Shown here piece after piece: positions 1-12,696 of a DNA stretch of 12,696 nt (within the stretch, counting starts at the first letter, position 1; the number at the start of each line of letters is the position of its first letter). Where the stretch lies: positions 1 through 12,696 of the forward strand of contig CBFGMF010000002.1 in the NCBI GenBank assembly GCA_965649825.1, given 5' to 3'. The translations under genes were made by a program, and so were the position numbers. The notes beneath the pieces were generated by a model. The model was not told the origin of the DNA and did not search any database. It saw only the letters and a list, made by a program, of their open reading frames with translations. Source of the DNA: Penicillus capitatus. Its lineage: Eukaryota; Plantae; Chlorophyta.

Positions 1-731
1 GGGGACATGGTCACTGTTGGCTGTGGGGAGGGACAGGCAGACCACTCCATGTCTGACGGCTGTCCAGGCTGCGATGCAGGAGGATCTGCGTGCTGCGTGG
101 CCGGCGGAGGATCTGCGTGCTGCGAGACATGTGGTGCAGCTGGCGTCTGGAGAGGCGGCGATGCGGGCTGCGCGGGCGGAGGCGGCGATGCGGGCTGCGC
201 CGGCGGAGGCGGCGATGCGGGCTGCGCGGGCGGAGGCGGAGCAGCAGGCTGGCCCTCTTGGGCCAGTCGCGCTCTCCTGTCCTCAGAGGACAGGACCCTC
301 GCCCGCCGCACAGGCCGAGGCTGTGCGGGTTGGTCCCTATTGGGACCGAACCGCACAGGAGGGGTCTGCGCGTCGAGGTGCGCTTGACCCCTCAGAGCAG
401 TAGTTTGGGCTTTGAGAGCCCAAAACAACTGCTCCCTCTCAGCCTCGCCCATCCCCACGAAGGCCCTGGGCGGTCGATTGCCCAGGACCTCCGGCAAAGA
501 CACTTGGGAAAATCTAAAAGACACACAAGGGTCAGAGATGTCTCGAAGAGCAGACCCGCCGCGCGCTACGGGGCTTCTCGACTGCAGCCGGACGCATGCG
601 TGCGCATGAAAAGCGTTCTGGCCGCAGTCGAGGAGCCCCGTTGCGCGCGGCGCGTCGAAACATGGCCAGTGGACTTACGGTCTTCCGGGATATCCGTAAT
701 CATCCTCGGTGGTCATATGTGCGTCGGCCAT
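1..731 (-). CDS. Hypothetical Pro-rich protein, 3' end runs off the window. Exons 731-679 and 513-<1, with an optional 48-nt cassette exon at 617-570
   Basis: ATG at 731 (MADAHMTTEDDYGYPGRP), canonical donor CC|GTAAGT at 678, and acceptor with CTGAC branch and pyrimidine tract (CTCTGACCCTTGTGTGTCTTTTAG|) at 514, all phase-compatible. The downstream frame is open to base 1 (FSQVSLPEVLGNRPPRAFVGMGEAEREQLFWALKAQ...PPPPAQPAS x3). TATAAA lies ~80 nt upstream of the ATG. It is absent from the ORF track because it has no stop in the window. No family recognised. Confidence 0.55.
79..239. repeat. 27-nt tandem repeat (coding minisatellite), two subtypes
   Basis: GAGGCGGCGATGCGGGCTGCGC(G/C)GGCG occurs at 152-178, 179-205 and 206-232, plus a partial copy. 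The related GGAGGATCTGCGTGCTGCG occurs at 79 and 106, again with period 27. Confidence 0.95.
553..656. repeat. Long inverted repeat / fold-back hairpin inside a predicted intron
   Basis: 557-589 is the reverse complement of 620-652 with 3 mismatches in 33 bp (one is G.U on each strand). The stem extends outward (553-555/654-656) and inward (590-595/613-619), and there is an ATGCG/CGCAT mini-stem in the loop. Confidence 0.9.
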
Positions 732-807
732 TGTCTTCGTCGCTTGCGTTCGCAGAAAACAACAGAAGAAACTCGAAACTCGAGTGCAGAAGGTCTGCGA
801 CAGGACC

Positions 808-813
808 TTTATA
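808..813 (-). promoter_or_regulatory. TATA box of the left-hand gene
   Basis: TATAAA on the minus strand (CCTATAAAGG context) in a GC-rich region, ~80 nt upstream of ATG 731. Confidence 0.6.
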
Positions 814-840
814 GGCCGCCTCGGTTACCGAGCGCGGCCT
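813..840. promoter_or_regulatory. Palindrome abutting the TATA box
   Basis: AGGCCGC-CTCGGT-T-ACCGAG-C-GCGGCCT: 7 bp + 6 bp inverted arms with a single bulged C. Confidence 0.5.
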
Positions 841-992
841 GCGGGTGGCGGCTAGGAACTGTCGCCGTTTGGCGGCGCCTGCATGCGCTGTCGGACAAGG
901 GAATCGCCGCCAGATCTCCGGAAACGCAGGATGCTGCCGTCGGGATGCGCGACGCGAACGGGAGAGCGCTTCTAGAAGCTTTGCAAGGAGTT

Positions 993-997
993 TTACA
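993..997 (-). terminator. Putative UGUAA polyadenylation signal
   Basis: TGTAA on the minus strand, ~12 nt after the TAG at 1009-1011. UGUAA is the known chlorophyte poly(A) signal, but this 5-mer also occurs by chance. Confidence 0.45.
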
Positions 998-1008
998 GGC
1001 AGGATTCT

Positions 1009-2577
1009 CTACAGTTTGTCCGTAAGCTCCTCTCTGAGTGTAACCCGCATGCGTTCTCTGCGGCCTCTCAGACGCGATTCTGCGAACGGCGAACCGTCCG
1101 AAGTCAGCTCCGCGTTGCCCGGGCAGAGGAACCATGCGGGCGTTCTCTTTCGCAGAAGCGGAACGGACTCTTCGTCTAGACGGCCGTCTCTTGCGAGCGT
1201 CTCCGTCGCAAACGCCGTCGAGAGAGCGTTCTGCGCGGTGTAACGCGAATCGGTTCGAGGAGTTGGCGTGCGTCCTAACTCCCTCGAACATGGAAGGCGG
1301 ACCAGAACGGCCGGCCTTCTGCGACAAGCAGACGGGCACGGAGTCGCCGTTTCGGTTCGCGTTTGCGCACAGCGTCGAAAGACTGTTTCGGAAGTCGCCG
1401 GTCGCTCCGATCAATGCAGTCGGTCGCGTTTTGCGTCTACTGTGCAGGACTGCCGTTCTGTCTGCGAAGCTATTCATTAGGACTGTTCTCGAGTACAACC
1501 TGTGTGTTTGCGCTGTTGATCGCGGCCGAGGCCAGTTGCCATCCAGTGCCATCGCCTTCTTTCATTCCGGCGTTCCACAGTACGGAGTGCGCCAAAGAGG
1601 CAGGGTGTCATTGAAGGGGTGGTATGCTGCTGCATCCTCATTGGAATCCTCCGTGACGTTCCATTTTAGTGTCTGGCAAGTTCTGAGGTTGTGTGTGAGG
1701 CTGTGACGGAGATCGTCCGTCTTCTGTTCGGAGACCACCACTCAGGATTCTTTGCTGTGAAAGACGAACAAGTGACGCCGATTGCTCTGAGTGCGTGGTC
1801 GTTCTAGGACGATGTCGTCGGTGCTGGCGATGATCTCTTGTACGTTAAAAGCAGTGAGAAATGCGTGAACGAGACCGTTTTTCGTCAGCTTTTTGCTTGG
1901 CCATTTGGACTGGTGATTCGGGATTGTTGACAGAAGAAGAGCGATGCTGAGAAGGCCATCCCAATGCCAGACACGGTCTCTTGGCTGGACGAAGCGAAAC
2001 CAATACCACGATCTTCATTCAGGAGATCGTGGAGGAAGGCAGACAACAACAATCCATGTGATTTTCTATAGAGATTGTAAATGCATCTGGACACCTGCGG
2101 TGCCTGTGAAGGTCGACTACGCAGGTCACTGACTCATCCTGCAACACATGTGAACTGGACGACCATTTCAGAATCTTCGATTTCGATCGTCAGCCGAAGT
2201 CTGGAGTCAAGCTGTCGGGTTCATTCGAGATTCAAGACTAATGCTTGCTACATGCTCTGTCCGATGTCGAATGTCCTGATCTGATAGTCTGTCCTTTCTG
2301 TTGAGCATCGCCCAGGCGCGTTGGCTCGTTGCCTTTAACAATAGAGGATCTATCGTTCTTAAAATTGTACGTAATTCAATTTCCGGGTCGATATACGTAA
2401 CAAAGGTCGACCTATGGTCAGGAGGGTATCTTTGTTGAAACGCCGCTTGTATATTTTTTTCCCACTCTATCACGGCGCAGGAGCCGAGAAGGAAGAAAGC
2501 TCTTTAGATTTAGACGCTAAACCATGCTTTAAGAATGCGCCTTTGAGCCCTGCAGGGGGTCGATGGTGATGTGCCAT
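1009..2577 (-). CDS. Multi-exon hypothetical protein; internal exon structure only partly resolved and could be two genes
   Basis: The minus strand is the A-rich strand here. Protein-like segments can be joined by typical-length GT-AG introns. At the 5' end, ATG 2577 plus intron 2522-2467 (56 nt) gives MAHHHRPPAGLKGAFLKH|EWEKNIQAAFQQRYP. The middle exon 1984-1811 reads PRDRVWHWDGLLSIALLLS...FNVQEIIASTDDI. At the 3' end, introns 1499-1437 (63 nt) and 1289-1231 (59 nt) give ...RLLVAEGRPFWSAFH|NALSTAFATETLARDGRLDEESVPLL...REELTDKL*, followed by TGTAA. Junctions between ~2250-1990 and ~1750-1500 are ambiguous. Confidence 0.45.
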
Positions 2578-2650
2578 CGATCCCTTGCCCTCACTGATCA
2601 AGAGGGCACAGTTCTCGCTCTGTCATCAGACAAGTGCAGGAAAACCATTC
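2533..2650. other. Predicted four-way-junction RNA structure (unassigned)
   Basis: P1 2549-2554/2635-2640; P2 2555-2566/2574-2585 (12 bp, 2 G.U on +); P3 2586-2592/2602-2608; P4 2621-2624/2629-2632; outer stem 2533-2537/2646-2650. Confidence 0.4.
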
Positions 2651-2837
2651 CCTAGTCTTTTCACTGTCCAGGGGAGTTGTATGAAAACTTCACAATGTGG
2701 CGCACCTGTGCAAATTAAGAATGCTATGCTGAGAACAGAGCTTTTCACGGAGAGAATCGTTTCGTTTTCGAGTGTCTTTATGACTCGGACGGCAAACCGT
2801 GCACACACAAATCTACGCACGCTCAAGAGTGTGGCCT

Positions 2838-2842
2838 TTACA
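2838..2842 (-). terminator. Putative UGUAA poly(A) signal of BTA1
   Basis: TGTAA on the minus strand, ~200 nt downstream of the BTA1 stop codon. Confidence 0.5.
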
Positions 2843-3042
2843 ATCAATCAGCAATCTTAATACGACCACCGTTGAATCGATACCGTCAATACTGAATGAA
2901 TCTCAGAAAAAGAGATAGGCAGGTTCGTATCAGAACAACACCAAGCCACATCTACAGTGCTCGCAGAAAAACCACTGTAAGATTAAAGAATGTAGCGACG
3001 AGGAATGTAAGACACTGTCTGTCGCACGTCAACGTTTGATCT

Positions 3043-5477
3043 CTACATCTTGATGCCCAAGTAGAATCCGTTGTACATATTCACCTTATCCATGTAATGT
3101 CCTCCCTGATCTGCTCTTTTTACGCATGTCACATGGAAACCGTGATCTTTCAGCATCTTGACGTATGGAGGGCACAGCGATGCAGAACGGAAAATAACGC
3201 GTCCTCCCTGAATGACTTGCTTGGACAAAAGCTGTATCACTTCGAGGGAACTCTTTTCGTCTAGCCAGTCAATATGATCCATCAGAATGACCTACAGAGA
3301 GAAGGCGGTTGCACCGAGTGCTTTGTCATAACACAGGAGCAAACCTTGGAGTATTTTCTCACGGCTAGCTCATCATTGAATTTTCCGTTTAGAACATGCA
3401 GCCGATCTATGGCTGTCGATTTAAGCTTCTTAAAGTTATGCTCCCTTAAGTAAGCTGGACAGTTGCTCTTTGTGTAATGTCCCTTCAAGCAATTGTAGTA
3501 GAAATAATTTTCATTCTTCACATGCGAGTAACGAGCCACCCCATCAAAAGTGCGTGCAACGTATGAGGGCAGTGTATACCCATCCTTTAGGATCAGCTGG
3601 TACTGCTTCGTCGGCACACCAGCACCAAACCACAGAACAAAGCGATTAAAAACCATGGAATGGACGAAGCGGACGACAAGCGAGATGAAGAATTGCGGTC
3701 CGGATTGAAAAAAGCGGACAATCCACATCTGATCCCATAGGTATCGTTGTTCCTAGAAACCGGCACCGAATGACATCCGAAGCTACAGCTGTCGACAGTG
3801 GATGGCTCACTTCAAGAGTATTTGCCTCAACGAGGGCGTCTGTTTGATTTGCCATGCCTGACAAATAGATAATGTACTGTACCATCCAGCACACTTTCCC
3901 CATCCCTCCTGCGTAGTAGAGGCCGCGTTTGAAATGGTATAGTTTTCTGTTCCAGAAGTCAATTGAATTTTGTGTCATGAAAGGCATCAAGTGTTTTCTG
4001 TAAACGCTGTCGATGTTTTCAAACTTTCCTTCACCGAACATTTTCCAGACTTGCTCGAATTCCAAGTTTTTAATGGCAACAATTTTGAGTTCGAGCAAAG
4101 CACTCTGGGCAGGATTGCAGTCCACGGAGTAGACCTCCTTCGCGTCGTGCAGCACCAAATTAAGAGAATTGCATCCTCCGCTCGTCAAGGTCAAACAGAC
4201 ATCGTTTTCGTTGATATTCAAGACCTGCGCGTCCGCGTCTGGGTCCTCCCATGACATCGTGTACAAAAATGTCGGAGGAAAGAGTGGAGGGGCTTGGGCA
4301 CGTCGGACAATATTGTGCACATGACCTAAACATCAGCCGCCGCCGCCATTGGCCCGACGGCGTATTCATATTGCTGTGGATGCTCTCACTTGAATGCCTC
4401 TTCCCAATCCAGACGTACCACGGCACACGAAGATAAGGGACATACGGAATCGAACCCTGTGCCAAAGATGAGATCTCAGCGAAAGAGATCTCTGGCAGAA
4501 AGCCATCTGTGCACTTGTCCATTGTATTCCCATTCCATGTCCATTTTGCAGTCGAGGTAGTTGCGCCGTTCTGGTCCAATATCAATGTTATCGGTATCAA
4601 AGATAGCTCTGCGCACCAAAACATGTTTAATAGGGCCTGTCCGTCAGCAAGAAGAGATACCTCCAGAAAAAACGCCTCACCCAGCTCATCTGACGTAATG
4701 GCAGATCATACTTAGACGATACAAAGAAATCACAGACACCGAAGAGTCCGCCTTCATCCAAGTACGAAAGAGCTCGATCGACAGCCTCGTGAAAAGGAGG
4801 TATCACTAGAACAAAGCGGAAAAACCATGCATTTCTCCTGGATCCCATAGAGAAGAGGTGGGGTTCACTTGAAAGGGAATAAGAGAAGGTGATCAGTGTT
4901 GCTTTCTGATCTTTCGGTGTGGCGAAGGTGCACGCATCGGCCTCGATCACCTGCACATTTGTCCACGAGTTCTTCTTAACCTTGTGCTGCGCCTGTTTGC
5001 AGAGGGAATGGCAAAGATCCACAATGTAGATTTGCTTGAAATCTGCGATGGGAAAGAACGCGTTCATCATCTGCACATTCTCCTGCGCATTATGCGTAAA
5101 TGATGGATAGATATCCTGGAAATTGGATCGTACTCCTGTGCCGCCTCCCAAATCAACCCAAACAACGTCGCGAACGTTGCGCAGGCGCGCAGCACATGCT
5201 GCCAGGAGTGGCTCTCGTCCCCAGAGGAACTTCTTGCGGAAACGGTCATCTAAAAACGGCATCTCCCGAAACATTTTTGTCAGCATAGAGTAATACAGGC
5301 ATCGGCTTGTGGAGCGTAGAATGTCTCGAGACGATCGGCGTGGCTGTCGCCGCGCGATTTAGCAAACCACATCGTTTTAAGCACCGTCAGATCTTTTTTT
5401 AAGTTCGTGCCGAGCGCTTTCATTTTGTCGAGGCGTCCTGCAGGACGCAGCACGAATCCATCTCCTCCTCGTCCCAT
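3043..5477 (-). CDS. BTA1: Betaine lipid (DGTS) synthase, bifunctional BtaB-like methyltransferase + BtaA-like 3-amino-3-carboxypropyltransferase, 662 aa as spliced
   Basis: Exons 5477-5297, 5249-5134, 5082-4869, 4805-4661, 4608-4515, 4456-4390, 4325-3811, 3752-3345 and 3291-3043 (1989 nt, in frame). All eight introns are GT-AG, 47-64 nt. The protein tracks Chlamydomonas BTA1 end to end: MGRGGDG..., RLETFYAPQADAY, VWVDLGGGTGENV (SAM motif I), FSYSLSMIPPF, PTFLYTMSWEDP, LTLTSGGCNSLNL, VDCNPAQSALLELK, NYFYYNCL, ILMDHIDWL, YMDKVNMY. Confidence 0.97.
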
Positions 5478-5601
5478 GATGGCCGCAAGAACGTTCGATA
5501 GTAAGGAACGGCGCGAACGCAAAGAGTCAAGAAATGCTCTGGTGTGATGGCGACCACCAATTAAAGATACAGGAATAATGCGAGCATGTGTGGGATATGC
5601 C

Positions 5602-7542
5602 TCATTTGGCTTTGACATCGTGACTCCTGTCTTCTGGCAGTAGAGCCACGAAAAACAAAGGCAGCAAGTTGCTAAAAACGCAAATCGTCGTCAGAAGTCC
5701 GAGATGCGAGAAGTCCTGATCTGTGACACCGAGGATTTTCGTCAGCCCGGCTCCTATAGACATAGATGTGACGTGAGCAACGGAATGGAATGACTTGCCG
5801 AGGAGGCCGCTTGCAATGCCTCCCCCGTTGCAGATGCTCATGAGGAGAGCAAAGAGCGTTGCCTCGACGCCTTCCGGGCATAGCCGAGTTGCCAGGACCA
5901 AGACTGGCATCAGTGCCACTTGACCGATGACTTGAAGAACAGCATTGTCCCCAAGGACAAATAGCTCATCGCTGAGACCAAATTCTTGGTTGATGCGACT
6001 GATGAGAATAAGCTGAGACATGCCGATGCACGTGCTCAGAATACAACACCACGAAAAGACTTTTTTCAACGGGACGGAACGAAGATAAAAACGGTAGATG
6101 CCTACGCCACAAAGATGTGCCACTTGTCCAATGAGCGCCACACGTCCCATAAACTCTGGCGTAAAATTCAGTTCGTTCGTTTCGAAGAAGAACATGGCAG
6201 ATCCGGCGTTGGGCATCGCCTGTAAAACCCAGGACAGTTCAAGAGAGTAGACTGGCACTCCGCACGCACCTCATACAGGAAGATAAAAATAGCTGGCATC
6301 AATACTCTCTTCTGCTTGAAGGCTTTCCACAAAGAACTGATCTGAGATTTCACACTGAGTAGTATTCCTTAGGGACGAACGACACAGAGAGAGTCAGTTG
6401 ACTGTTCGTTGATAGAAACCTGTGGGAATGCCATCGAGCAGAGGCAATGTTTCTTTCTCTTGCGAAACAGGGAGGCTTCGATAAGGCTTCTCATTCACAA
6501 GGAAAGCACTCACGGCAACGAATAAAGGAAAGATAGACATGGTCCGGAAGACAAATCTGGGCCCAAAGGCATCGACAAAGTATCCGCCATAGTAAGAACT
6601 GACGATGCCGCCCAGAGCCATAGACGACCAACAGAGAGATTGCAGGGAACCTGAAGTCTCCTGATCCAACATCGATTGCTCAAAAGCGAGTCATGGAAAG
6701 GGGGAGGGCAAAGCACTTGCGGTTCGCCTCGTGCACGTTCCACGACAATCGAATCGATCACAACATCACTGCACGCCGTTCCAACGGACGAGACAGCAAG
6801 CATGACAACAGTTGTATAAGCTGTCATTGTCGTCGTTCCCAGCAGAAACCACGATACTGAACCTGCATGGGGTTTTGGTCAAGGCGATCGACGGGTGTGG
6901 AAAGAATAGGCACCTAACAATCCACAGATGACGAGATATGAACGTCGGCGATAGCCAAACAGTGGAAATGCATCGCTTGCAAATCCATACAGAGGTTTAA
7001 TGATCCACGGTATTTTTCCAAACTCTTCAAGAAAGGCCACCTAAGCAAAAACACTCATGCCACCATTCCTCCGTTTCGAGAAATGCCTGAGAGGGGCCTT
7101 GATTCAGCTCATCTTTCAGAAAGTAAGAGACAGCGAGCATCGACAGAGAAACAAATCCCTGGACGAAGTACACTGGCAGGGCTGTGATGGACGGGTCATG
7201 AAACTAGACAGTACCCAAAGAGATGGCCAGCAGTTCCGGTGAAGCAGAGCGTCGCAGCATCTGTCCGATGTTCTTGATTTCCCAAGTTTGGGCGTCGTCC
7301 ATCTCCCCTTCCACTGCTTCGGTGCTCTCACTCTCCTCCACGGGTTTTATTGGGATAATTTCTTTCTCGGGAAATGTTGGTTCAATTATATCACGACCGC
7401 TTTCGTTAGGCATCAGCACTTTCGATAGCTTTGAATAGCGGTGGTTAAGTCGAGGCCGAAACGACCGAGAAGGAACGACATGAGGACAGAGGCGACTTTT
7501 CTTGACGGCTAGTGTTGCATGATTGCGCAATCGTGATGCCAT
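5602..7542 (-). CDS. FBT: Folate-biopterin transporter (BT1/FBT family, MFS) with probable plastid transit peptide, 532 aa as spliced
   Basis: Exons 7542-7215, 7172-7087, 7040-6914, 6862-6717, 6660-6420, 6367-6270, 6219-5799 and 5753-5602 (1599 nt, in frame). Hallmark motifs: [81 protein letters not shown]. The N-terminal ~50 aa are Arg/Ser-rich and poor in acidic residues. Confidence 0.93.
5754..5798 (-). other. GC-AG intron (FBT intron 7, 45 nt, in frame, no stop)
   Basis: G|GCAAGT donor, CTCAC branch-like motif, TATAG| acceptor. Removal restores GLLGAGLT as in plant FBT; the nearby GT (5794) would frameshift. Confidence 0.85.
7041..7086 (-). other. GC-AG intron (FBT intron 2, 46 nt)
   Basis: CAG|GCATTT...TTTTTGCTTAG|GTG. 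This is the only junction I found that restores the frame and gives the 18-residue KD-to-PW spacing remembered from Arabidopsis FBT. Confidence 0.8.
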
Positions 7543-7635
7543 TCTGCCAAAACGAACTCTACGCTATGTGAGAGTTAGTTAACTCTTTCTTCATGATAGA
7601 CGACGACATCAAGCGGTTCCACAACAACCCAGCCT

Positions 7636-7640
7636 TTACA
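7636..7640 (-). terminator. Putative UGUAA poly(A) signal of the TPR-SGNH gene
   Basis: TGTAA on the minus strand, ~104 nt after the stop at 7744, within the 201-nt spacer. Confidence 0.5.
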
Positions 7641-7743
7641 GTGAACAAAGAACCACTCAATCTTATACCGTACGAAGTCTGTCTCGGCATGGAGATGGTG
7701 TTTGAGGCCTTCCATCTGGGGATCCCTTTTCTCGATGCTGGCA

Positions 7744-10300
7744 TCATGAATGGCATTGTGTGAGAGCTCTTCTTAAGTACTGCGTGTAAGTGGGAGACAA
7801 ATGCGTGTCGTCGAACTTCAGCTCTGTTTTCAATGCCGTGCCATCTTCACTCACCAAATCGTCGAAAAAGTCTAACCAGTAAACACGTTCTTTATACGAC
7901 GTCTGTTCTGCCAGGGTTTGAACAGCCGGCTTCAGTGCTTCGTTATAGGCCGTCACAATCTGTCGTGTCACATCCAGGGCGGGAGGCACTGGGTGGACGT
8001 AGATCACAAACTGCCGTTCCTTTACGAGCTCCTTGATGACTTGGATATAGATGCTGACCGTCTTCTTGATGGCAGATGCTTGAGAATCGTACTACAGAGA
8101 CACAAAACGATCGACATGGTGTCCTATTCCATCTCACGTCGATACTTTGCATTTCTCCACGGCCAATCCAATTCCTGTCCGGCAATCGATCTCACCGAAC
8201 AGCAGAATGACAGAGGATTTTTTTGGAATGGACTGCATCGTATGCTGAAATCCATGCTTTGGATAGAATCTGCTTTCTTTTCGCAGATGCCACACTTTGC
8301 ATCCCGTCACGAGCTTCGGCACCAGTAAATGTTCTTCACCTTTTAGCAGGACTCTTTGCCAAGCTCCCGAAAGACAGTGAGAATCTCCGCAGAGGTAAAG
8401 GGGTTTGAGATCGTCCAGTCCTGTTGGTTCAGCAGGAGGAATCTCTTCGAGTATCTGACGAATGCAGTTGAAGTAAGCAGCTTCGTTGCGCACAGTTGTT
8501 GTATGGAGCTTTTTAGAAGAGGCCTCGCAACAAGGATGCACAAGCTCAATGAGTTGATAGGTTCGCTCCAATGCTCCTCCAATGAAAAGAACCTTGACTG
8601 TTGTGAACAACAACGCCAGCAGATCCAATTGCAGCTCAGAGAACTCGACCTAACAATCCACAGAACGCTGTTGATGACCTCGAAGAGTCAGGCAGTGATG
8701 TCAGACACCGTTTCGACGATTTCTTCGACAGTTTCCTTCTGCTCATGCGGTTTCCAGTTCTCACTCTTAAACCATCCATACTCCCCTCCTTGATGAAAGA
8801 ATGGAAGGCCATCCAGCAATCGAGCAATCTGACAGACAGACAGTCAATGGGCTAACCGAGTGGAAGGGATGGCGTCGACCTCTTTGCATTCGAGGCTGCG
8901 GATGAGCTGGACGTGACAGATGTTCATAAAGGTCCTGATAAACTGTACGATCTCATCGGTTTTGGGGAGGAGTTCCATTGTGTGAACATAGTTCAAAGCG
9001 ATAGAGGGGTCTTCTGCATCGATCGTCACTGCTTTCTCATATAACTGTAGGGCAGCCTTGATAGCACCATAATCCTTAATTCTTGCTGCCAAGAAAGCAT
9101 ACGCCGAGCCCAATCCTGTCCCTGTCTTGAGTTCCCTCACCACAAAGTCCACCGTCTCTTCTTTCTGTGAACACCATTCCTGGCTTTCAGCAGGAGATGT
9201 GACAGGTGAATGATCTACCTCAAAGCAATCAGCGAGGTATCGTTTAACGTCCTCGTGTTCTTGTTTTTGCATGATTAGTCTTAAGAGCACACGGACGGCG
9301 TCTTCGATCAGTCCACGATCATAAGCGATTTTGGCGTAGAGAAGCAATCCTTCAAAATGCGTTCTTTCTGGTTCGACGACAGACATGACGAGCTGCACGG
9401 CTGTGTTCTCCCATGCTCCACCCATCACATACATTGCATTGGCAGCATAGATTTCGACATCCTTAAGTGGATACTCTGGAGATGGCTGAGAAACAAAGAA
9501 AGCACGATCCATCCTTAAGATGTTCAGCATGGAACGGGTATACTTTTCTCTTGGCGATGTCGACTGCCTTGTTAAAAATCTGGATCGCAGCTTTGTGATC
9601 TTTTGAGGCACTATTAGCACAGAAGCTGTGAATTGTTGAAAGCATCTTTTCTGCTGTTTTACTGCTTGAGTTTTCCAGCAGCGACCAATACCGCCAGGTC
9701 ATCGGGGTAATGACTGAGACATGTCTCGCACCATTTCTCAGCCACTTTTGGTTTACCCACTCTCGTCCATAGCGATATCAAGTGCAGCAATGCCTCTTTG
9801 TGATAGGAACATCCCCTCAGAATCTACTCAACCATCTCCGAATCGCACACGGGCATATCGAGTGTAGCAAAGACCCGTTGATAGAGCTCTGAGGCATTGC
9901 GAAAACGACTCTGCGATTCTTCCTCCTCCCCTCTCTTGATAAACTCGATCATGAGTGGAGAATTCTGATTGACCGTCGGTTGGGGAGGTGTCGGTTGGAC
10001 ACTTTGCTGTTTCGAAGGGGGAGTCTTCGCTGAAGGCGGTTTCGGTTCTTTGCTGTCGCGTACAGGAATTAAGAAGACGTCTTCCATGTCTTCAAGCACC
10101 CTCCCCACACGTTCCGTACCCGACAACGTCGATTTCACTCCGTTTTGCAGCAACCATTCATTGGCTGCAAATTTTCGTCCGAATTTCGTCTCATAGCGCT
10201 GTGCGACGTCTTCCAACAACGCCTTTACTTTTGCCTCGTCGCTTACGCGGCAGATCAGTGTACACGTCTCTTCGCCATCCAGGTGGACATAAATCTTCAT
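7744..10300 (-). CDS. TPR-repeat protein with N-terminal ubiquitin/PB1-like segment and C-terminal SGNH/GDSL-hydrolase-like domain, 725 aa as spliced
   Basis: Exons 10300-9875, 9823-9663, 9610-9544, 9485-9219, 9164-8880, 8828-8709, 8649-8146 and 8091-7744 (2178 nt, in frame); introns are GT-AG, 51-59 nt. TPR-like helices: ASELYQRILRGCSYHKEALLHL, AALQLYEKAVTIDAEDPSIALNY. SGNH-like blocks: LYLCGDSH (I), ILLFGEIDCR (III), FDDTHLS (V). Confidence 0.8.
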
Positions 10301-10446
10301 TTTGATAACGAAAACGAGCGAAAATCGTGCATTCTTACGCAAAGCAGCCCGAACTTATCCAACCCACATCTGCGCGCTTGCAAATCGTTGTTTCACACAA
10401 CACACGGTTTAAAGAGGAGACCCTTAAAAAGATCTTCCGCAGCGCT
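10301..10446. promoter_or_regulatory. 146-nt divergent (probably bidirectional) promoter/5'-UTR region
   Basis: Lies between head-to-head ATGs at 10300 (-) and 10447 (+); no + strand ATG in the interval. Confidence 0.55.
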
Positions 10447-11338
10447 ATGGACTCATTTCAGTCGCGTTCCCAAGCATTGGAGGGAATGTATTTCCGTGGA
10501 CGCGAGACGACATCGATGGAGATGTACATGCGCCGACTCGTTGAAGAAGGGAAAATCCCAGCGTCGTCTCTCGATGTCTTCGAACAGAACAAAGCCGAAG
10601 TCCGAACGCGACCTGCCTCGGAAATCGTTCGTCGTCAGGCCAAGAGACTCCAACCAGGTCAGTGGAGAATCTAGATCTCCATCACTCATGCAGAGCCTTG
10701 CTGACGACATGCGTTTTGGACGCAGACTTCGTGCTATCGGGTTCGTCGACCATCGGTCTTGGCCAACCTGTGAAACTGGGTGGTCTATCGCGTTGGAGTG
10801 TGGACAACATCTCGATCTTTGACGTGGAAGCCGGCAGGAAGATGGCAGCAACTCCTCGACGTGAACCGTCAATCTTTGAGATCAAGAGAGCGGCTGCGAT
10901 CGAGAAGGCGGCGACTGAGACACCGCTGGTCGGCAAGTATCGTCTCTATCCACGGCTATCACCCGGACGAGCCTTCTTCTGGGGAACAATGGCGGCGCTG
11001 ACGGGGACAATGATCGGAACTAAGATGGCATGTCTTGTCCTCGATATCAAATCCGTAAAACCGCCCCTCTTGCATATCAGAATGACAGGCGGGCAATCTG
11101 TGCAGATGGATGAGGTTGCTGGCAAGATGAAGACAACACTCGAACCCTTACGAAGTTTCATGGAGTCCACATTCACGCCCGTCAATGGAGCGGTACGGCA
11201 GACAATATATGTCCCTATTGGCATGTGGTGTGAAAATGTTAGTTGTTGACGGCGGGGAACGGAAGTGTGGATCCCACTTCGCTGAATCGATTTGCCGGAC
11301 AGCTCAAAGAGAAATTCTCCCATAACTCGTCGTCCTAA
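10447..11338 (+). CDS. Putative mitochondrial ATP-synthase-associated protein(s): IF1-like N-terminus + TMEM242-like membrane C-terminus (one 240-aa spliced gene or two adjacent ORFs)
   Basis: Fused model: exons 10447-10657, 10726-11054, 11106-11192 and 11243-11338 (723 nt, in frame). The N-terminus MDSFQSRSQALEGMYFRGRE matches the IF1 inhibitory helix pattern. The C-terminal RAFFWGTMAALTGTMIGTKMACLVLDIKS|MDEVAGKM matches the TMEM242 pattern RAxxWG[ST]...LxVxSMxDxxxKM once the 51-nt intron is removed. Family calls are from memory. Confidence 0.6.
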
Positions 11339-11543
11339 AACAAGACACTCACGATTCTCTCTGCCATCAAAGATCTCCTCCACCCGATTCCTTTGACATT
11401 CCTATTCTTTGTGACTGCCAACCATAAACGCTCTGCCATTCTTTGTTATATGCTGAAATGATCGTGGCATCCATGATCATGTGAATTAAATCCGTTTCTC
11501 ACGTGTTTCGCTCGTCAAGGAGTAAACGCAAGTGACTGGCAGA

Positions 11544-12360
11544 CTAGGATAGAATGGAGGCGAGGTGTGTTATGTCTGGAAAATCCCGAAGATCCGAAAA
11601 GAGATTTGAAACAATATCCAGAATGTCGGAGACATCGATATCGGATGTCGCACCGATCCGCCTCTTTCCGAATTCCAGCTCCGTATCCATTATCCCGCCG
11701 CCCAAAATCAGTGTCTTTTCATCGCCGAGCTGACGTACGAATTTGCATTCCTTGTCGATGAATTTCGCGGCTCTGCGGTAGCTGCTTGTGCATTGCGAAC
11801 CTGATCGATGATACTCGAGACGTGGAGGCTTGCATTCAAACTCGCTGTGTTCCCTGAGCCGCCCACATGAACACAGGCAGCTCTCTCGACAACGGATCTC
11901 ACCGATTAACGACCTTGCAGATGCCAGGCACGAGTTCGAACGTGATCTCCGGTCCTTCGCACTTCTGTAGTAGGATGGCACTGTCCTCTTTCTCGGGTTC
12001 TGTACAGAACTCCTTGTATTTTTCTTTGATCGTGTTTTCCCATTCGGCATTCGTCGCCGGAGTGTCTTTGGCGAGATCGAAAATCTGCGGGTTCAGCAGT
12101 CCGGCGACGAAATCGGAAAGATCGATGTCGAAGTCGATATCGTCGATATGCGGAATCTTCGAAATGGCATCCTCAATCGACAGCAAGTTTCGCCGCCGAC
12201 TTTTACTGTCGATCGTTTCCTCCTGAACGTCTGACAACCCTTGCGCGAAATCGCATATCGCATATCGCACATTCTCCGCCGTCAGATCGAGATCGTCATC
12301 GCACGTGATCGACGTCGAACAGGTACAGAAGAAAACAAACAGTATCCAGTTCTTCGGCAT
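11544..12360 (-). CDS. Secreted Cys-rich hypothetical protein, 255 aa
   Basis: ATG 12360 starts a signal-peptide-like MPKNWILFVFFCTCSTSITC. Intron 11902-11854 (49 nt, CG|GTGAGA...CTCAG|) joins the two listed ORFs in frame. An acidic region precedes the Cys-patterned domain FCTEP...CEGPEI...PGIC...ECKPPRLEY...QC...KEC. The last codons could be altered by a further intron. Confidence 0.75.
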
Positions 12361-12507
12361 CCCGTGCGCCAATCACGTAAAGAAATGCGGATCGATAGAG
12401 AATCGAATCGTCGTTCTCTTCATATCGAGACTGTGCTCTTAAACGGATCAAAAGCTCGAATTGTACGACAATGTAGACATGGCACTTCGAACCGCTGCAT
12501 CGAGGAT

Positions 12508-12696
12508 CTACTGGCAGTCGTTCGTGTCACAGGGAACGAAATCCTTTCCCTTCAGCGGCCGGTGGCGTTCCTTCAGTGATACGACGGGCGAGAGCGATTC
12601 AGCTCTTGCCGAATTCGAACCGACAGACTTGCCCGTTGTTACGGCCACGCCTGTCGAGTCCATAAACGAAGCTGATTTTTCCGACAAATCGTTGAA
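12508..12696 (-). CDS. Probable 3' end of an upstream gene (partial, Ser-rich tail)
   Basis: The minus frame is open from the window edge (FNDLSEKSASFMDSTG...VPCDTNDCQ*) to TAG at 12510-12508, ~150 nt before the next ATG. There is no homology evidence. Confidence 0.35.
   Translation of the reverse strand, partial: FNDLSEKSASFMDSTGVAVTTGKSVGSNSARAESLSPVVSLKERHRPLKGKDFVPCDTNDCQ

Follow-up and report, generated by a model that had tools for sequence, protein, structure and literature searches.

A predicted IF1-type motif and TMEM242-like anchor in one gene of Penicillus capitatus and its relatives among green algae

The stretch of DNA considered here, called the window throughout, comprises 12,696 nucleotides (positions 1 to 12,696, forward strand, of contig CBFGMF010000002.1 in assembly GCA_965649825.1) of the green alga Penicillus capitatus (Chlorophyta), and the subject is a gene at 10447-11338. 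A preliminary description, made from the sequence alone, had seen at this place a possible 'fusion or pair' of two parts related to ATP synthase, namely an N-terminal helix like that of the ATPase inhibitor IF1 and a segment like the second transmembrane helix and tail of TMEM242, a c-ring assembly factor. The locus holds a single nuclear gene of four exons, whose product is a single-pass membrane protein and belongs to an uncharacterised family conserved across Chlorophyta. The architecture of the protein, an IF1-type N-terminal motif followed by a TMEM242-type anchor, with both sequence relationships that it implies, is assigned with high confidence, and a more tentative proposal is made for its function.

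The gene and its family

The elements of the gene, with the spacer in front of it, are listed below.

10301-10446: 146-bp spacer between the start codon of the gene and that of a minus-strand open reading frame (ATG 10300-10298); presumably a shared promoter and the 5' untranslated region of the gene
10447-10449, plus strand: start codon ATG, read from the sequence
10447-10657, plus strand: exon 1, 211 nt, residues 1-70, phase 1 at its end; codes for the N-terminal helix and a linker that is basic and probably disordered
10456-10518, plus strand: IF1/zeta-type motif, residues 4-24, FQSRSQALEGMYFRGRETTSM
10658-10725, plus strand: intron 1, 68 nt, GTCAGT...CGCAG, CTGAC at 10701-10705, phase 1
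10726-11054, plus strand: exon 2, 329 nt, residues 71-180; middle domain and transmembrane helix
10752-10964, plus strand: family-specific middle domain, approximately residues 80-150, LGxxVxLGGxSRWxVDxxSIFDV..G..LAATPRR..FE..RA..
10965-11144, plus strand: segment homologous to the second transmembrane helix and tail start of TMEM242 (DUF1358), residues 151-193, split by intron 2
10971-11042, plus strand: sole hydrophobic segment, predicted transmembrane helix, residues 153-176, AFFWGTMAALTGTMIGTKMACLVL (Kyte-Doolittle, AlphaFold2)
11055-11105, plus strand: intron 2, 51 nt, GTAAAA..TGCAG
11106-11192, plus strand: exon 3, 87 nt, residues 181-209; amphipathic juxtamembrane helix
11193-11242, plus strand: intron 3, 50 nt, GTACGG..TGTTAG
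11243-11338, plus strand: exon 4, 96 nt, residues 210-240 and stop codon TAA at 11336-11338; conserved C-terminal helix F..+L+.+.

The start codon, the N-terminal peptide DSFQSRSQALEGMYFRGRE (residues 2-20) and the GT-AG intron of 68 nt with its CTGAC element all match the preliminary description. Translation of exon 1 opens MDSFQSRSQALEGMYFRGRE... / MDSFQSRSQALEGMYFRGRETTSMEMYMRRLVEEGKIP..., and removal of intron 1 brings it into the frame of the open reading frame at 10662-11249; read without splicing, exon 1 runs into a stop codon at 10672-10674. Introns 2 and 3, missing from the preliminary description, are required to reach the end at 11338. Their positions were set by alignment to homologues, in which the splice of intron 3 recovers the conserved C-terminus ...NGALLTAGNGSVD..LNRFAGQLKEKF. 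The spliced coding sequence amounts to 723 nt in four exons and encodes 240 amino acids followed by TAA. Retention of intron 2, which would keep the frame, was considered and rejected because the 17 residues that it adds occur in none of the transcript-derived or annotated homologues.

Database searches returned colinear full-length homologues with 41-68% identity, including BSKO_02182 of Bryopsis sp. KO-2023 and a EukProt model, and these homologues begin at the same methionine (MD[GAS]F...) as the window protein. Several of them lie on contigs of approximately 0.9-1.2 kb that code for the protein uninterrupted, and these contigs are therefore regarded as transcripts; in addition, complete-reading-frame MMETSP transcripts of Pyramimonas and Pterosperma hold both the IF1-like and the membrane part. 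The Bryopsis gene (locus L001, 6001-7731) has four introns, three of them at the positions of the introns in the window gene, and the equivalent of intron 1 is identical in position and phase. The Bryopsis introns measure 157-296 nt and those of the window gene 50-68 nt, so that introns are much shorter in the window genome.

A profile search against 1.84 billion representative proteins yielded 192 family representatives at E<=1e-3, many of which are 240-275 amino acids long and match from end to end; a second, word-indexed search for homologues with the wide alignment yielded 13 matches, few of them named. All named members are chlorophytes annotated as 'hypothetical' or 'uncharacterised', and they come from Bryopsis, Apatococcus, Symbiochloris, Tetraselmis, Pyramimonas and Pterosperma, that is, from Ulvophyceae, Trebouxiophyceae, Chlorodendrophyceae and Pyramimonadophyceae. 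An A-x-E-x2-aromatic motif is found within the first 45 residues in 66 of 88 full-length-like sequences, and most of the others are truncated at the N-terminus. Two members, P0071 and P0115, have neither the IF1-like helix nor the linker; they start instead with a Ser/Ala/Arg-rich, transit-peptide-like N-terminus, which is followed by the middle domain and the DUF1358-like transmembrane helix. The N-terminal module is therefore exchangeable, a point that bears on topology.

Whether the two parts belong to one gene could be asked, since the unspliced exon 1 alone gives an open reading frame of 75 residues (stop at 10672-10674), after which a frame of 195 codons runs from 10662 to 11249, as would be expected of a small gene for an IF1-like peptide next to an independent gene for a membrane protein. 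However, the parts are joined in every full-length homologue, transcript-derived sequences and the annotated Bryopsis gene among them, and a conserved ATG is missing from the frame at 10662-11249. Proteins that seemed to consist of the N-terminal module alone were examined as candidates and discarded, as they are read-throughs of exon 1 into intron 1 or reading-frame calls extended at the 5' end; the read-through fragments of other algae have a common end point at ...P|G. A separate pair is hardly credible given this colinearity, the nature of the stand-alone matches and the presence of the motif in 66 of the 88 sequences. The earlier view of both modules within one locus is thus borne out by the colinear homologues and the matching Bryopsis introns, and of the phrase 'fusion or pair', the single gene with both parts stands, the separate pair falls, and the joining of two once-separate genes is not borne out.

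Resemblance to IF1 and to TMEM242

IF1 binds the alphaDP/betaDP interface of F1 through F-x2-R-x2-A-x-E-x2-[YF]-F-[KR], a motif of IF1, Inh1 and Stf1 (PF04568) whose spacing is common to the present family and which the bacterial zeta subunit, probably by convergence, employs for the same binding. As counted in the preliminary description, residues 2-20 share 9 of 19 positions with yeast Inh1 (DSFVKRERATEDFFVRQRE) and 9 of 19 with bovine IF1 (GAFGKREQAEEERYFRARA), and both segments occur as given there in the database sequences P0207 and P0212. In the pairing with bovine IF1, F4 falls on F22, R7 on R25, A10 on A28, E12 on E30, Y15 on Y33, F16 on F34, R17 on R35 and M24 on L42, so that F4, R7, A10, E12, Y15 and F16 stand at a spacing identical to that of IF1. 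Across 35 N-termini of the family, R7 is kept in 20, A10 in 33, E12 in all 35, an aromatic residue at position 15 in all 35 and F16 in 27, with a hydrophobic residue at position 4 and K/R at position 17. The best-conserved positions, A10 and E12, as well as R7, Y/F15 and F16, fall on invariant residues of IF1 (A28, E30, R25, Y33 and F34), which are those whose mutation weakens the binding of IF1 to F1 most, E30 forming a salt bridge with R408 of beta-DP (PMC3041923); F22 is likewise invariant and sensitive to mutation.

Profile comparisons point in the same direction. Aligned by hhalign to an IATP alignment of 18 vertebrate and yeast IF1 sequences, the family gave P=2.2e-4 at full length and 3.1e-5 and 4.3e-6 with the N-terminus only, and the alignment always fell on the inhibitory region of IF1, not on its coiled coil. 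In three controls, the columns of IF1, of the IF1 helix or of the N-terminus of the family were permuted; the scores averaged ~9 (standard deviation ~2) against an observed 26.5, which was reached by none of 300 permutations in two of the controls, and the reversed IF1 alignment scored 11.6. The third control, permutation of the IF1 columns, produced one outlier of 133 among 300, which is taken as an artefact of gappy columns. When the window peptide of exon 1 was scored with an IF1 hidden Markov model, its 12.7 bits were reached by 1 of 5000 shuffles of the peptide, and 11 of the 35 family N-termini scored above all 5000 shuffles, the best member reaching 23.4 bits. Shuffles and permutations alike preserve composition.

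Two profile searches of the PDB, which were not confined to any protein family, ranked IF1 at the top. In the first, a 43-position N-terminal profile was run by hmmsearch against all 177,635 distinct PDB sequences; the best match was Tetrahymena IF1 (E=0.007), the next a further IF1 (E=0.021), and the 19 matches at E<=10 included seven IF1 sequences in all, bovine and yeast among them, as well as the IATP-like P2 of plants. The full-length family profile again had Tetrahymena IF1 as its top match. A phmmer search of the PDB with exon 1 gave chance matches to the phage protein Sri only, and a search of the PDB with a six-sequence Bryopsidales profile gave nothing. Chain 7dtl_A ('PSK'), with the IF1-type motif AFGKLEAAREEEYFYRKQKEQLER, was also among the PDB matches of the N-terminal profile.

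Taken at the level of sequence, the resemblance of the N-terminus to the IF1 motif is real and a property of the whole family. The earlier assignment of an N-terminal IF1/zeta-type motif is accordingly upheld for the family, on the strength of hhalign, the PDB ranking, the shuffle controls and the conserved columns. The remark that no presequence precedes the motif is likewise sound, given a motif from residue 4 onwards and a start methionine that homologues conserve, and the supposition of a chlorophyte was correct as well.

For the membrane part, DUF1358 (PF07096, the TMEM242 family) was matched at E<=1 by 17 of 39 family members, and no other Pfam family recurs in more than three of the 39. 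The matches scored 27.7 bits for P0129, 25.3 for P0054 and 24.2 and 26.6 for the family consensus, against a gathering score of 23.4, and all were limited to profile positions 72-112 of 115. In hhalign, 43 columns of the family were aligned with residues 80-122 of human TMEM242, its second transmembrane helix and the start of its tail, at 93.4% probability (P=2.6e-7); the human query was validated by its 195.6 bits across the whole DUF1358 profile. The transmembrane helix and approximately 18 following residues align (GRAxxWGTxLAxWGT...LxIxSxxDvxxKM). These DUF1358 matches and the alignment to human TMEM242 show that the preliminary description was right to name the second transmembrane helix and tail of TMEM242, and the helix and juxtamembrane segment are, as far as profiles can tell, homologous to those parts. 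A Kyte-Doolittle scan found residues 153-176 as the single hydrophobic segment of the protein, and no hidden first transmembrane helix emerged from the hydrophobicity scan.

TMEM242 binds subunit c and is required for c-ring assembly; it crosses the membrane with two helices, both termini lying in the matrix, and in human it also binds ND2, ND3, NDUFC2 and the MCIA complex (PMC8020751). Orthologues of TMEM242 have been reported in most eukaryotic lineages (PMC10214729), and those counted may include the present family.

Compared with these known systems, the window protein is a canonical member of neither the IF1 nor the TMEM242 family. It shares the second transmembrane helix and tail start (residues 80-122) with human TMEM242, which however has 141 amino acids and two transmembrane helices, whereas the window protein has 240 amino acids and one hydrophobic segment, and adds an N-terminal domain of 150 residues (IF1-like helix and middle domain) and a longer helical tail. 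Approximately a third of the DUF1358 profile (72-112 of 115) is matched by the family, and the window protein alone has no Pfam match. IF1 has a presequence, which the window protein lacks, and is small and soluble, with a coiled coil for dimerisation at its C-terminus and a pH switch rich in His; the window protein, in contrast, is predicted to be membrane-anchored and is three times longer, has neither coiled coil nor His cluster, and continues after the motif with ..RRLVEEGKIP.. and a disordered linker. Since the motif begins at residue 4, the equivalent of IF1 residues 1-20 is missing. In the zeta subunit of alphaproteobacterial F1Fo (PF07345), the motif stands at the extreme N-terminus without a leader, as it does in the family, but zeta is a soluble bacterial four-helix bundle, whereas the window gene is eukaryotic and intron-bearing and no bundle is predicted for its family; the likeness is restricted to the motif.

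The plant protein P2 (NDUP2, At2g27730) is a mitochondrial single-pass protein with an IATP-like motif N-terminal to its transmembrane helix and its N-terminus in the matrix (PMC7447434). It differs from the family in having a presequence, a length of 113 amino acids, a transmembrane helix unlike DUF1358 and a role as a structural subunit of complex I. Homology to P2 was tried as a candidate relationship and rejected, with hhalign giving P=0.082 and 0.7% probability over the motif region only. The P2 chains of plant complex I (6x89_P2 and 7a23_n) carry the motif LSEEE[KR]AAEN.[YF].KK.EQ[DE]KL and a single transmembrane helix next to ND2. The most fitting description of the protein is a new architecture in which two known modules related to ATP synthase are combined, and which is conserved across Chlorophyta. 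No description of an IF1-like N-terminus on such proteins was found in the literature on DUF1358, on TMEM242 in algae or on IF1 of Chlamydomonas and Polytomella.

Predicted structure and genomic surroundings

AlphaFold2 with a six-sequence alignment gave an unusable model (predicted local distance difference test, pLDDT, 42.6), and with the 39-sequence alignment it reached a pLDDT of 76, predicting isolated helices only. In the latter model, made for the homologue P0004, a helix at 3-34 (pLDDT 70-97) and a short helix at 40-48 are followed by disorder from approximately 50 to 95, and by helices 102-110 and 118-132 in the middle domain, which is family-specific and the most strongly conserved part. 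The transmembrane helix spans 148-173 (pLDDT >90), is the one hydrophobic helix of transmembrane length, and is followed by helices 179-213 and 219-234. The middle domain has no relative in Pfam or the PDB. The C-terminal tail (residues ~181-240, nt 11106-11335) draws weak apolipoprotein A-I/A-IV-like matches (PDB 3s84, E=0.029; Pfam Apolipoprotein, E=0.022), which suggest that it forms amphipathic helices punctuated by prolines and may rest on the surface of a membrane.

The genes around the locus are unrelated to ATP synthase.

9824-10300, minus strand: head-to-head open reading frame, MKIYVHLDGEETCTLICRV..., no Pfam match; its start at 10300-10298 lies 146 bp from the ATG of the gene described here
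3282-5286, minus strand: pieces of a BTA1-like gene; DUF3419 (E=6e-52 and 3e-27) and a sub-threshold methyltransferase domain (E=8e-4, 20.5 bits against a cut-off of 27)
5602-6258, minus strand: folate/biopterin transporter exon, BT1 family (PF03092, positions 225-420 of the profile, E=3e-60)
8134-9620, minus strand: pieces of a TPR-repeat protein, with TPR_19 and TPR_14 in 8844-9620 and no Pfam match in 8134-8628

Given the head-to-head spacing of 146 bp, a bidirectional promoter is probably shared by the first of these and the present gene. The pieces at 3282-5286 have the architecture of a betaine lipid synthase (BTA1-like) split by introns. At the start of the window, the GC content is 0.60-0.69 over positions 1-1500, versus approximately 0.47-0.51 across most of the remainder, and a tandem repeat at 152-239 consists of 3.3 copies of the 27-bp unit GAGGCGGCGATGCGGGCTGCGCGGGCG.

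Possible function, rival explanations and significance

The order of the parts allows a mechanism to be proposed. The N-terminus is predicted to form a helix of approximately 32 residues that carries the IF1-type motif, after which come the basic, presumably disordered linker, the middle domain of approximately 70 residues, the TMEM242-like transmembrane helix with its juxtamembrane segment and the amphipathic helical tail. If the protein is located in the mitochondrial inner membrane, its TMEM242-like helix may dock it to subunit c or to Fo assembly intermediates, as TMEM242 does, and the tethered N-terminal helix could then plug a catalytic interface of F1. Until the stator joins, ATP hydrolysis by free F1 or by F1-c-ring intermediates would thereby be held in check; alternatively, the protein might serve as a membrane-anchored IF1. 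In the assembly of the human ATP synthase, IF1 is present on the free F1 module (PMC13434801), which is counted in favour of plausibility. That the tethered helix inhibits F1 or assembly intermediates, or acts as a membrane-anchored IF1, is offered as a tentative proposal with a real but less than even prospect of being right. The fuller picture, a natural covalent chimera in green algae that unites an F1 inhibitor with a c-ring/Fo assembly factor, whether a membrane-tethered plug guarding F1 and F1-c-ring intermediates or the anchored IF1 of this lineage, is held with somewhat more doubt.

A number of observations weigh against this inhibitory reading and have to be set beside it. In Pfam searches, the exon-1 peptide, the C-terminal part and the full protein of the window gave noise only, without IATP, zeta or DUF1358; IATP was not matched at E<=10 by the exon-1 peptide or the full protein, nor at E<=1 by any of the 39 members, and no member came to the IATP gathering score of 25 bits, P0121 being the best (E=0.32, 11.9 bits). 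Zeta (PF07345) was the best Pfam match of one member, at positions 2-35, with a sub-threshold E=0.089 and 13.7 bits against a cut-off of 25. When the profile comparison with IATP, zeta and DUF1358 is considered as a whole, the single window sequence has no Pfam match and, taken alone, would have failed under the refuting condition set in the preliminary description; it is the family-level profiles that support both modules. The similarity to IF1 spans just ~30 residues, lacks the equivalent of the gamma-contacting IF1 residues 8-20, and is degenerate in some family members. Moreover, zeta provides a precedent for an IF1-type motif that arose by convergence (PMC9317440), and the resemblance is therefore no proof of common descent. 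The match to TMEM242 covers its second transmembrane helix only, with one hydrophobic segment versus two, and Foldseek found nothing in the PDB at E<=0.001 for the AlphaFold2 model. The DUF1358 link is the sole pointer to the presumed mitochondrial location, and the N-terminal helix has a net charge near zero and no presequence in front of it. Finally, the second helix of TMEM242 is oriented so that the tail lies in the matrix (PMC8020751), and the same orientation here would put the IF1-like helix on the side of the intermembrane space, opposite to F1.

The evidence on topology is in conflict. A matrix location of the N-terminal side is indicated by the net charge of the flanks of the transmembrane helix, which favours it in 36 of the 39 members, and by the transit-peptide-like N-terminus that replaces the helix in the two variants; the count of K and R is slightly higher on the C-terminal side, and the flank charges are not decisive.

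Another explanation is that the protein takes the place of TMEM242 in chlorophytes, as an assembly factor in the membrane whose N-terminal helix does not act on F1. The helix could instead bind the region of ND2 and gamma-carbonic anhydrase in complex I, in the manner of P2, or have a role in regulation or oligomerisation, possibly in the intermembrane space, to which the orientation known for TMEM242 would assign it (PMC8020751). P2 itself, a single-pass protein with an IATP-like motif (Pfam IATP, E=0.021) and one of the PDB matches of the N-terminal profile, offers a model, as it adjoins ND2 and NDUC2 and its N-terminus lies on the gamma-carbonic-anhydrase domain (PMC7447434); human TMEM242 binds ND2, ND3, NDUFC2 and the MCIA complex too (PMC8020751), and P0071 and P0115 do without the helix entirely. 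However, P2 is aligned weakly with the family, leaving the transmembrane helix unaligned (P=0.082), and IF1 far better (P=4.3e-6), and the conserved positions are the F1-contact residues of IF1 (PMC3041923), which would be unexpected for an unrelated partner. A counterpart of TMEM242 without action on F1 is accordingly a possibility to be taken seriously, though a doubtful one. The likeness to IF1 might, furthermore, be a by-product of any charged amphipathic helix, the protein then being a lineage-specific membrane protein of unrelated function and possibly not mitochondrial. This would agree with a short match that never exceeds the Pfam threshold for IATP, with isolated helices and an empty Foldseek search, and with the low-specificity, apolipoprotein-like matches of the tail, but it accords poorly with a PDB-wide, unbiased search dominated by IF1 chains of ciliates, mammals and yeast, with composition-preserving permutations and shuffles that stay far below the observed scores, with local alignments that select the inhibitory region and not the coiled coil, and with the independent link to TMEM242 at 93.4% probability. 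Such a coincidence is improbable.

During human assembly, the free F1 module and vestigial complexes carry IF1, and the c-ring is built by TMEM242 and TMEM70 (PMC13434801, PMC8020751); the means by which a half-built ATP synthase is kept from futile ATP hydrolysis or proton leak are still for the most part inferred. If the inhibitory reading holds, inhibition of assembly intermediates and assembly of the rotor, which in animals are the work of separate proteins, would be physically linked, and an IF1-type helix joined to a TMEM242-type anchor would make their coupling directly testable in one gene. Chlorophytes would gain a candidate ATPase inhibitor, and the IF1 motif a third context after soluble IF1 and bacterial zeta, or a fourth if plant P2 is counted, which bears on the question of descent versus convergence. 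Even if the helix proves to lie in the intermembrane space or to have complex I as its partner, the family would establish the form that relatives of TMEM242 take outside metazoans.

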